A stretch of 64,000 nt of DNA from positions 62,001-126,000 of the IMG/VR virus record IMGVR_UViG_3300024308_000018. One strand, given 5' to 3'. Of the stretch, positions 6,289 to 8,027 are shown piece after piece. The stretch's first letter is position 1. The number at the start of each line of letters is the position of its first letter. The notes beneath the pieces were generated by a model. That model saw nothing but the letters and a program-made list of their open reading frames with translations. It made no database searches and was not told the origin of the DNA. The translations under genes were made by a program, and so were the position numbers.

Positions 6289-7257
6289 TTAGATGTGCTG
6301 GCGCTCCATCTTGCTCAGGCTGACTTCCACCGCCTTCTGCAAAGATTTCGGGATCGCTTTAGGGCCCTGAACTGCGCAGCCGATGGCATAGGCAAACAGG
6401 TTGCGTGCGTTGGTCAGCGCGTGAGCCGGGAACTCGGGACGCGCTTCAGTGAACGTCGTCCACTCCGGCCACAGGTTGCCGACACGTTCCGGATTCTCGC
6501 GACACAGCATGTCGATCTCGGAGGGCGCGATACCGTGCACGGTGCGGAAGTGCTTGATGATAGTCTTCACCACCAGCGATGCGTTCTCGTCTTCGACAAG
6601 GTTGTGAAGACTGCGGATGTCAGGCTCTTCGCTCTTGGTGTAGGAATCGAGCAGATCCAGCAGGTCGTCCTTGCTGCACGTGGTAACGTGGCGCAGCTTC
6701 AGCAACAACGTCATCCAACTGACGCGGGTACGTTGCGGAAGATGGTGCTCCCAGCAGTGCGCGGCAAACGCCTGCGCGAATGCCTGCGGTGCCATCATGG
6801 TGTCGGCGGCCAGAGTCAGAACGTCGCGGTTCTCGTCCTTGCTGAACACCTTCTTGTATTCGTAGCCCTTCTTGCTAGGCTTCACCCAATGCAGAACCTT
6901 GATCGCGGCCTGCCCGCACAGCAACTTCTGGCCGTGGAACCAACGCATCACGTTGTTGAGTTCCTTGATTGTGGCTTCAACCTTGTCGGCTGGAATCTTG
7001 GTGCGCAGCTCCAACAGGTTGTCGATGCCCTTCACCTTGTGGGTGCTGTAGACACGATCAACCTTGACGCCCAGAACACTGGCACCAGCTTCAGGCTGCG
7101 GCCCAAGGTTGGCGAGCACCTGAGATTCGCTGAAGCGTACCTCTTCTTCTTTACCGGGCACTTGCAGCAGGGTTTTACCTACCGCGTACCCGCCGTGGCG
7201 CTTGCCATCAACCTCTACAACGAGGAAGTGGTCGCGCCCGAATTTGATAGCCATCAT
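6289..7257 (-). CDS. hypothetical protein, possible degenerate zincin-like fold
   Basis: 322 aa, ATGA-coupled to the upstream gene. FAAHCWEHHL and NLFAYAIG resemble HExxH and E-F-A-E motifs with the catalytic residues altered. Confidence 0.55.
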   Translation of the reverse strand: MMAIKFGRDHFLVVEVDGKRHGGYAVGKTLLQVPGKEEEVRFSESQVLANLGPQPEAGASVLGVKVDRVYSTHKVKGIDNLLELRTKIPADKVEATIKELNNVMRWFHGQKLLCGQAAIKVLHWVKPSKKGYEYKKVFSKDENRDVLTLAADTMMAPQAFAQAFAAHCWEHHLPQRTRVSWMTLLLKLRHVTTCSKDDLLDLLDSYTKSEEPDIRSLHNLVEDENASLVVKTIIKHFRTVHGIAPSEIDMLCRENPERVGNLWPEWTTFTEARPEFPAHALTNARNLFAYAIGCAVQGPKAIPKSLQKAVEVSLSKMERQHI

Positions 7258-8027
7258 TTTCTCCTGAACGTTGCAGTAAACACGTCAGTCTTTTTACAGT
7301 ATTCGACACGGATGCCGACAAACTTGGTGTGCGCCGGACAGTGCATTTGGATTTTGCCATCCACGCCATCGATCCAAATGTACTCGCCGTCGTAGCGCGG
7401 ATACAGGATTTCCAGATGCTGCACGCCCTGCGGGAAGCGCTTGGTGTTCGCCATGTTGGTCACTGCCCACAGCGTTGTGGGTCGCACGAAGAACGTGTCG
7501 CGGAACATGACCTTCATGGCCCACGCTGGAAGACGCTTACGGTACGGCGGGATCCGACGCCAGTCTCTGAAATACTTCTGCCACAGCAGAAGGTCGGTGA
7601 ACAGTTCGTGCAGCTGCTGCTTCTGCTCCGCGTTAGGTTGAAGGTGGGCAATCAGTTCGCTGGGGCCCACGGGGATCGCGCTAGATTCTGTGTCGAACTC
7701 CACGCACCACACGCCGCTACGCATGATCAGGTGCTTGGCCTTCAGCAAACGCGTTCCCGCAGGCGGTGCCTCAAATTGGAACTCGCCGAACCCCTTGAGG
7801 GTTAGAACGTTGCCGTCGAAATCCGTAACGTACTCCTTGGGGATCGCGATGAACCCCATGGCGTTAGAGTCCATGGCCTGCAACTCGTAGAGCCTCGGGA
7901 TCTCGAACACGGGTGGCTTCTTGCAAGCGATCCCCCGCGCGGTTTTCGCAACGGCCGCGAGATGCGCAAGAGCGGGTTGAAGTTGGGCCACGGGCCCGCG
8001 AGTGATCTTTAGTGCCTTGACTACCAT
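7254..8027 (-). CDS. RuvC-less protein with two tandem TnpB/Cas12f-like N-terminal (REC/WED) modules
   Basis: Start at MVVK (GGAGA RBS). HLQPNAEQKQQLHELF resembles TnpB RLYPNAAQTELINRT. DGNVLTLKGFGEFQF...RLLKAKHLIMRSGVWCVEF and DGEYIWIDGVDGKIQM...KFVGIRVEY...FTATF each resemble TnpB wedge strands. No RuvC DxG motif or Zn finger. Confidence 0.55.
   Translation of the reverse strand: MVVKALKITRGPVAQLQPALAHLAAVAKTARGIACKKPPVFEIPRLYELQAMDSNAMGFIAIPKEYVTDFDGNVLTLKGFGEFQFEAPPAGTRLLKAKHLIMRSGVWCVEFDTESSAIPVGPSELIAHLQPNAEQKQQLHELFTDLLLWQKYFRDWRRIPPYRKRLPAWAMKVMFRDTFFVRPTTLWAVTNMANTKRFPQGVQHLEILYPRYDGEYIWIDGVDGKIQMHCPAHTKFVGIRVEYCKKTDVFTATFRRK

Follow-up and report, generated by a model that had tools for sequence, protein, structure and literature searches.

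A phage protein predicted to consist of two TnpB/Cas12-type WED-REC modules, encoded upstream of an array of BoxA-like boxes, hairpins and terminators

A 64,000-nucleotide (nt) stretch of DNA from an IMG/VR virus record (positions 62,001 to 126,000 of IMGVR_UViG_3300024308_000018; this whole stretch is called the window) carries on its minus strand a gene (7254..8027) for a basic protein of 257 amino acids that appears to be built from only one half of the TnpB/Cas12 architecture. In TnpB and Cas12, the WED-REC half holds the guide RNA and reads the duplex of the target-adjacent or protospacer-adjacent motif (TAM/PAM). The 257-aa protein would contain this half twice in tandem, and it lacks both the RuvC nuclease and the zinc-finger (TNB) domain altogether, as opposed to having them in inactivated form. 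An array of eight units (4786..5783, minus strand) lies two genes 3' of the gene in the direction of transcription, and the units look like nut-type sites, made of a BoxA-like box and a hairpin, that are combined with intrinsic terminators, rather than like a guide array. The explanation favored here is that the protein is a domesticated, non-catalytic tandem WED-REC protein regulating phage expression, next to an array of nut-like units. We regard this combined explanation as evenly balanced between right and wrong. Its parts differ in strength: a true relationship to TnpB-type WED-REC is likely, and the extension of this relationship to both halves is probable, with less assurance.

The gene is genuine and conserved, and purifying selection acts on each of its halves. 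The list of open reading frames (ORFs) gives a 269-aa frame at 7254-8063 (minus strand) with a GTG start. An earlier interpretation made from the letters of the window alone (the sequence-only reading) had placed the gene at 7254-8027, and this location and the length of 257 amino acids are correct because the homologs, which are 254-257 amino acids long, begin at the ATG at 8027, with a GGAG 7 nt upstream. A word-indexed search of 5.8 billion proteins returned seven homologs with 54-88% identity, none with a Pfam domain. When 1.84 billion cluster representatives were searched exhaustively with HMMER, no more than six proteins passed E <= 1e-3, and three are full-length relatives with 29-37% identity. 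About a dozen homologs were found in all and every one is metagenomic. No homolog was found in the cultured phages, plasmids, and reference genomes searched, or in a genome set with one representative for every one of 185,579 species of bacteria and archaea; 50,697 phage genomes had no tblastn match to the protein or to two distant homologs, and a DNA-level search also came back empty. Searches of the protein against Pfam, PHROG, NCBIfam, PADLOC, and PDB-sequence profiles were also without a match. The ratio of nonsynonymous to synonymous substitution rates (dN/dS) was 0.12-0.29 against three homologs, with constraint in both halves. The four closest variants (including P0001-P0003) represent the four combinations of two N-half types with two C-half types; therefore, recombination near residue 120 has brought the modules together in new combinations.

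The evidence for a WED-REC architecture comes mainly from structure prediction. A full-length AlphaFold2 model, based on a 12-sequence alignment, had a predicted local distance difference test score (pLDDT) of 77.8 and a predicted TM score (pTM) of 0.46. In this model, the order of a strand, helices, and a five- or six-strand sheet occurs twice (residues 2-115 and 124-255). The N-terminal module (residues 1-121; 7665..8027, minus strand) is predicted to consist of beta1, two helices that resemble a miniature REC, and a WED-like five-strand sheet. The C-terminal module (residues 122-257; 7257..7664, minus strand), delimited by secondary structure and by profile alignment to TnpB, has the order of a strand (ELIAHLQPN), a long helix (AEQKQQLHELF...), an R-rich low-confidence linker (residues 159-182), and a six-strand sheet with the terminal FTATFRRK. 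In other words, each module would have the TnpB/Cas12 WED topology with a shortened REC insertion. The peptide strings that the sequence-only reading had quoted are all found in the protein, whose second half begins ...ELIAHLQPNAEQKQQLHELF.

When the full-length model was compared with the PDB by Foldseek, ISDra2 TnpB ranked first (E 1.4e-3, probability 1.00), and the further top matches were ISFba1 TnpB, Cas12k, LaTranC, Cas12f, Fanzor2, and Cas12n. Unrelated folds appeared only from a probability of <0.1 down. A viral structure library likewise yielded TnpB-like 'transposases' of giant viruses and phages for the full model. Two of the matches in the BFVD library, A0A386K639 (Dickeya phage JA11, 362 amino acids) and A0A1S6L3E0 (Erwinia phage Yoloswag, 325 amino acids), are uncharacterized proteins with TnpB-like folds (probability 0.99) from cultured jumbo phages of the same wider group. 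The N half modeled alone reached a pLDDT of 85 and a pTM of 0.74, and Cas12/TnpB-family entries made up 13 of its 14 top PDB matches. Its query-normalized TM score was 0.56-0.59 to TnpB and at most 0.36 to other folds. Thus, the TnpB/Cas12 family came out on top for both models in the AlphaFold and Foldseek check that had been proposed along with the sequence-only reading.

Evidence for the C half came from profile-profile alignment with real TnpBs, 10 from plasmids and 114 more. Residues 122-247 aligned colinearly with TnpB residues 11-171 in hhalign (P 0.0085-0.03), a score that was reached by one of 60 column shuffles. The alignment spans the RLYPNxxQ strand-helix, the FPKFK motif, and the LKLPKLG strands of TnpB; the C half itself has an LxPNxxQxxL strand-helix start and an FP(K/Q) motif before the barrel, as in TnpB. 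A comparison of E-values suggests that the C half adds to the match of the model with ISDra2 TnpB (8exa_A), which was found at 1.4e-3 with the full-length model versus 0.49 with the N half alone.

Several observations weigh against this interpretation of the fold. No sequence-profile method assigns the protein to any TnpB family: genuine TnpBs carry PF12323, PF01385, and PF07282 together, and neither these nor the NCBIfam TnpB models matched the protein even at E <= 1-10. The Foldseek E-values are modest (1e-3 to 1e-1) with root-mean-square deviations (RMSD) of 5-9 Å, the models were built from only 12 aligned sequences, and the C half is supported weakly (P about 0.01-0.03). Sequence similarity between the two halves is not significant (BLASTP E 0.52; hhalign P 0.13 with 109 colinear columns), so the two-module reading rests on the predicted structure and the weak TnpB profile matches. 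The claim of two REC-WED halves was upheld in part: the model shows the order of elements twice and the N half matches Cas12f and TnpB, but the match of the C half is weak and the halves do not resemble each other in sequence. The profile check on TnpB was similarly divided between the Pfam and NCBIfam models, which gave nothing, and the hhalign result for the C half.

Could the likeness to TnpB have arisen by convergence, or reflect no more than a generic fold (a small beta-barrel plus helices), in an unrelated phage protein whose function cannot be deduced from TnpB? The lack of any match at the level of hidden Markov models (HMMs), the weak Foldseek E-values with high RMSD, and hhalign P-values of merely 0.01-0.07 are all compatible with such a protein. 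So is the outcome with the ESM Atlas, a protein-language-model atlas in which the whole protein and the C half scored ~0.5, which is uninformative. However, nearly all the top matches, in two libraries and with two query models, are TnpB, Cas12, or Fanzor proteins, the TM scores of unrelated folds (<=0.36) are well separated from those of TnpB (0.56-0.59), and the C-half alignment runs from the N-terminus of TnpB to near the end of WED with LxPNxxQ in common. Convergence is distinctly unlikely on this evidence.

The part of TnpB that follows the barrel is missing. No RuvC with its D-E-D triad was found in the protein, which terminates 2 residues past the last strand, right after the second barrel. 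The protein has four cysteines and no CxxC motif. The absence of RuvC and of a zinc finger, which the sequence-only reading had asserted, is thus confirmed, and the same is true of the lack of a flanking transposase or insertion sequence (IS): no transposase occurs among the neighbors, and the gene is single-copy at a fixed position in all loci, while IS200/IS605 elements are mobile and multi-copy.

How does the protein compare with known members of the family? The best structural matches for the full and N-half models were ISDra2 TnpB (PDB 8exa/8bf8/8h1j) and ISFba1 TnpB (8iaz). Each half resembles IS200/IS605 TnpB in its predicted topology of beta1, a helical insertion, and a beta-barrel. 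Unlike TnpB, the protein has no RuvC, lid, or zinc finger, its module is duplicated in tandem, and REC is cut to 2-3 helices. Unlike an IS200/IS605 element, the locus has no TnpA and no IS ends, no overlapping omega-RNA was identified, and the gene sits in a conserved core block of the phage. Cas12f (PDB 8dzj, 7wju, 8j3r), whose chain B was the top match for the N half, works as an asymmetric homodimer in which two WED-REC units share one single guide RNA. By analogy, the 257-aa protein could conceivably be a fused pair of such units. However, the Cas12f monomers have a RuvC and a zinc finger and use a CRISPR array with a trans-activating CRISPR RNA, none of which was found at the locus. The TldR proteins have an inactivated or trimmed RuvC fold, a sequence still recognizable as TnpB, and an adjacent RNA that combines a scaffold with a guide. 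Two reports describe them as domesticated, phage-encoded relatives of TnpB that bind rather than cut (10.1101/2023.11.30.569447; 10.1101/2025.07.22.666180). Unlike a TldR, the 257-aa protein lacks any RuvC and fails all HMMs, and no scaffold-guide RNA was found at its locus. A literature search turned up TldR and other RuvC-bearing derivatives and no RuvC-less or tandem WED-REC protein. To our knowledge, all TnpB derivatives (the Cas12 types, Cas12k, Cas12m, TldR, and Fanzor) retain a RuvC fold, whether active or not.

The array was delineated by a scan for its box, a terminator scan, and hairpin folding. Its units occupy 5697-5783, 5576-5657, 5411-5500, 5312-5386, 5190-5270, 5063-5143, 4940-5021, and 4807-4896, all on the minus strand. 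The order along that strand is the operon of the 257-aa protein, an intrinsic terminator (5836-5815), the eight units (5783-4807), a promoter-like motif, and a 310-aa gene, so that nine intrinsic terminators follow each other in succession. Each unit consists of the box GYTCTTTGYTC, a hairpin, ~20 variable nt, a terminator with the stem-loop GGGYGGC-UUCG-GCYGCCC, and a U tract. Between neighboring units there are ~40-70 variable nt, the spacing of units is 114-157 nt, and the recurring parts are the 11-nt box and the terminator stems alone. The box occurs eight times in the 64 kb, where 0.19 copies are expected, and all eight copies are in the array on the coding strand. The hairpin begins at most 2 nt past the box in 23 of 27 units. 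The unit hairpins have a mean minimum free energy of -5.9 versus -2.7 for shuffles, and none of 2000 resampled shuffle means reached the observed value. The sequences of loop and stem vary between units, and orthologous units differ by compensatory changes in the stem, such as that from CCAGCG/CGCTGG to CCCGCG/CGCGGG. Further arrays were found in related contigs (L001:12160-13326, L003:12176-13098, L007:1837-2735), and the box is kept in the arrays of lineages in which the 257-aa protein is only 37% (L003) or 29% (L007) identical.

The box corresponds to a known element in part. The BoxA consensus of gamma-proteobacteria is GYTCTTTAANA, in which the C at position 4 is critical (10.1101/091223). 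All eight boxes of the window and those of L001, L002, L003, and L007 have GYTCTTT with this C. NusB-NusE contact 8 nt of BoxA and it has been argued that the relevant nucleotides go no further (PMC3177189). Nucleotides 1-7 of the box are identical to nucleotides 1-7 of the consensus, and they equal positions 2-8 of the contacted octamer. Box positions 8-11 are GYTC versus AANA in BoxA and are outside the contacted octamer as it is numbered in PMC3177189. Because the box begins with the BoxA core and has a boxB-like hairpin alongside, the units look like nut-type sites. The array probably interacts with host NusB/NusE (S10), serving antitermination or supplying short decoy RNAs. Counting against the putative Nus dependence of the array, the agreement with BoxA covers 7 of 11 consensus positions, and low-depth assembled metatranscriptome contigs showed no transcript ends. 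A reading of the box as a sigma-54 or sigma-70 promoter was rejected because the spacing and the upstream hexamers misfit by eye and the box is found nowhere else in the 64 kb.

As in the nut sites of phage lambda, the hairpin follows the box in the way that boxB follows boxA, and the units are on the transcribed strand before terminators. The array shares GYTCTTT with the BoxA core of rrn and suhB as well. Unlike a lambda nut site, the units are present in eight tandem copies, each ~20 nt from its own strong intrinsic terminator, and their hairpins are not conserved in sequence, so no specific boxB of the N type is present. In a scan of IMG/VR for tandem boxes, ~116 matches were mostly single and the multi-box ones that were inspected were coding repeats; the 257-aa protein together with this type of array was found only in the contig of the window itself. 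No Rfam family matched at the locus.

The sequence-only reading had proposed that the array could supply guides and that the protein could be a single-chain pseudo-dimer, a nuclease-free and RNA-guided DNA binder. The WED-REC fold resembling TnpB and Cas12f fits such a system, the array accompanies every homolog that has sufficient flank, the segment between hairpin and terminator is the fastest-evolving part in some orthologous units, and the succession of a box, a hairpin, and a variable segment is loosely similar to a Cas12a-type CRISPR RNA (crRNA). Like a CRISPR array, the locus has tandem units (each about 115-160 nt) with conserved and variable parts and a strain-dependent number of units. 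Unlike a CRISPR array, it has no 25-40-nt direct repeat, no uniform spacers, and no protospacer matches, and it has a terminator in every unit. No long repeat or scaffold was found in the units, the conserved parts being 11 nt and the terminator only; every unit is an independent terminated module whose hairpin sequence differs from that of the next. The variable parts had no match beyond the terminator stems in the 64-kb window, 50,697 phage genomes, and 72,556 plasmids, and in a search for antisense targets the RNA duplex scan gave noise and blastn-short gave only chance matches of 10-13 nt. BoxA accounts for the box. Furthermore, the RuvC lobe helps to hold the guide RNA and the heteroduplex in solved TnpB complexes, and the 257-aa protein has no such lobe. 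Guide RNAs encoded by the array are thus highly improbable; the structural insight of the sequence-only reading, an unusual one, is largely borne out, and its guide story is unsupported. Comparably small is the chance of a related possibility, in which the double WED-REC protein, as a minimal RuvC-free offshoot of TnpB/Cas12, would be an RNA-programmed or RNA-scaffolded binder that lacks the nuclease lobe, is loaded on the BoxA-hairpin units or the leader, and finds nucleic-acid targets or reprograms the elongating RNA polymerase.

The array is where the sequence-only reading had put it, downstream of the gene, two genes further along, at 4786-5836 on the minus strand. The order of leader, 257-aa gene, 322-aa gene, (124-aa gene), and array is kept where the protein is only 29-37% identical, and every homolog contig with enough flank carries the array, all in identical gene order. 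A homolog that occurs with no array, which the sequence-only reading had named as evidence against itself, was therefore not found among the contigs that reach far enough, but this is weak evidence given that the gene order is the same throughout. The co-occurrence is not separable from general conservation of gene order, a further point against a functional pairing; the link between protein and array is weak and consists of this conserved order. The array gains and loses units quickly. Arrays of related strains differ in how many units they have and in which ones: at contig joints, 158, 427, or 801 nt are skipped and sequence is replaced (4970-5772; L001 versus the window). The variable part of unit 3 (5457-5476) shows complementarity to the ribosome-binding site upstream of the 257-aa gene (8029-8048), perfect over 11 nt and extending to 17 of 20 positions in total. 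L001 combines a C-to-U change in the mRNA with the corresponding G-to-A change in the unit, but pairing there is limited to 7 nt, and L003 has none. The control frequency of such pairing is 2%, so chance is possible.

What would the protein do? From the predicted fold, we infer that it is a sequence- or structure-specific nucleic-acid binder and a regulator of phage gene expression. RNA hairpins are favored over double-stranded DNA (dsDNA) motifs as the ligand, and both rank above RNA-guided targeting. The most economical candidate ligands would be the leader of its own gene and the downstream BoxA-hairpin units. By binding the units, the protein could decide the passage of RNA polymerase through the nine terminators into the genes for the 310-aa protein, a 156-aa protein, and the clamp loader.

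The leader (8028..8325, minus strand) is a conserved stretch of ~290 nt from a promoter-like motif to the ATG, as delimited by comparison across loci. Within it are hairpins (GGGAAT..ATTCCC and CCCAG..CTGGG), three copies of the motif GAAGCRAAGCG, and the palindrome TTCCGTGGGCGGAA, which is ~25 nt 5' of the ATG, just ahead of the ribosome-binding site. The outer stem pair on the flanks of this palindrome is changed from G-C to A-T in L023. The covariation among six leader sequences was unconvincing and the RNAalifold covariation term was positive; therefore, there is no case for a structured leader RNA. The promoter-like motif AATCTGTAAA (8326..8335, minus strand) has a conserved position relative to the ATG (-301 to -306) across seven loci. 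With one mismatch allowed, the window has 13 copies versus 1.8 expected, at 3304, 4757, 5547, and 8326 on the minus strand and at 10942, 18121, 20096, 23839, 46853, 51125, 62360, 63598, and 63765 on the plus strand. The strand always agrees with that of the local genes and the copies are mostly shortly 5' of an ORF start; therefore, AATCTGTAAA is probably a phage promoter element, and it perhaps serves the phage sigma factor encoded at 19001-20104. A similar motif, TTCTGTAAAG, is present in Dickeya phage AD1 (L018, around 4045). Further upstream is a non-coding stretch (8336..8856, no strand assigned) rich in (C)AACGTT repeats. The 824-nt gap at 8063-8886 contains 8 AACGTT sites, mostly in the form GCAACGTTC, versus 1.0 per kb windowwide, an ~10-fold enrichment. 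Two copies of an ~27-nt repeat and GGATTC/GAATCC hairpins are also found in 8336-8856. The gap may serve as a cluster of operators or as an origin of replication.

These upstream sequences bear on another explanation, in which the protein has kept the TAM/PAM-reading surface as a dsDNA binder and acts as a transcription factor or origin-binding protein. Its candidate sites would be the (C)AACGTT repeats, the GAAGCGAAGCG motifs, the TTCCGnnnnCGGAA palindrome, and the box in the form of DNA. The ~10-fold enrichment of AACGTT in the upstream gap, the conserved motif patches with a palindrome 25 nt before the ATG, and the position of the gene among replication genes are in keeping with such a role. 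L006 has a GAGCGAAGCGAG-like motif on the opposite strand, a hint that the site acts at the level of DNA, and the box is a direct repeat (GYTC-TTT-GYTC) in the copies of the window, which would suit a two-module protein. However, the putative motifs might serve other phage or host factors, and the hairpins beside the box, with their compensatory changes, indicate selection at the RNA level. On balance, a dsDNA-binding role is unlikely, if still worth serious consideration.

The regulator favored here would be made from the first gene of a three-gene operon. The stop codon of the 257-aa gene overlaps the start of the next gene (ATGA), a 322-aa gene (6289..7257, minus strand) that matches PHROG 17197 'peptidase'; therefore, the two are translationally coupled. 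The operon ends with a 124-aa gene (5904..6278, minus strand), known from the ORF listing and library searches, which is followed by the intrinsic terminator found by the terminator scan (5815..5836, minus strand). The idea of a split TnpB, with the 322-aa neighbor as a separate RuvC half, was rejected because its hhalign score to TnpB (14.3) equals the shuffle mean and it has no PDB match. The ESM Atlas gave a weak hint of the papain-like peptidase clan for the 322-aa protein. Dickeya phage AD1 has neighboring genes in common with the window, but it lacks both the 257-aa gene and the array. Its AD1_214 (L018:4092-5701) was rejected as a syntenic ortholog because it is part of a longer ORF in a phage that has neither: the annotated 350-aa coding sequence begins at an internal GTG, and the frame is open from an ATG ~560 nt upstream, which gives ~536 amino acids and includes RRAAKVCLYGTIFSAG. 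We take RRAAKVCLYGTIFSAG to be a sequence resembling motif B of PolA.

The wider setting is that of phage DNA, which is also contained in a 229,746-bp IMG/VR contig. Library searches of the neighbors identified a clamp-loader ATPase (2093-3289, minus strand), a RuvC-like resolvase (10381-10950, plus strand), a DnaG-type primase (13723-14766, minus strand), and the phage sigma factor mentioned above; a single-stranded DNA-binding protein (SSB) and a UvsX-like recombinase are also encoded around the gene. The gene belongs to the replication, recombination, and transcription module of an uncultured jumbo phage. The nearest cultured relatives of the SSB and the 322-aa protein are in jumbo phages of Erwinia, Dickeya, Pseudomonas, and Yersinia (Yoloswag, Alexandravirus AD1/JA11, PaBG, and fHe-Yen9-02). 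A 365-aa protein (15103-16200, plus strand) matches PHROG 1706 'CRISPR/Cas system associated' (E 9e-14) and has no Pfam match; it may be a nuclease of the Cas4/RecB type that belongs to the recombination module of the phage.

This setting also bears on a possible role as a decoy or in anti-defense, in which a nuclease-free WED-REC mimic would capture the RNA (crRNA or omega-RNA) used by type V or TnpB-like systems of the host. A phage-encoded protein that keeps the RNA-binding half of the fold and has lost the catalytic part is what such a mimic might look like. However, there is no PADLOC match and no other defense context, and the gene is located in a conserved core block for replication and transcription, not in a variable accessory island. 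This role is the most improbable of those considered. The isoelectric point of the protein (9.6) is that of the basic protein described at the outset.

The run of eight successive BoxA-hairpin-terminator units appears to be an unusual means by which a phage engages or titrates host Nus factors. For the TnpB/Cas12 family, the protein, if it is what the models predict, would provide a 257-aa scaffold for probing what the WED-REC half binds when the nuclease lobe is gone. A conserved phage protein made of two WED-REC modules alone would further mean that the nucleic-acid-gripping half of these enzymes can be exapted by itself.

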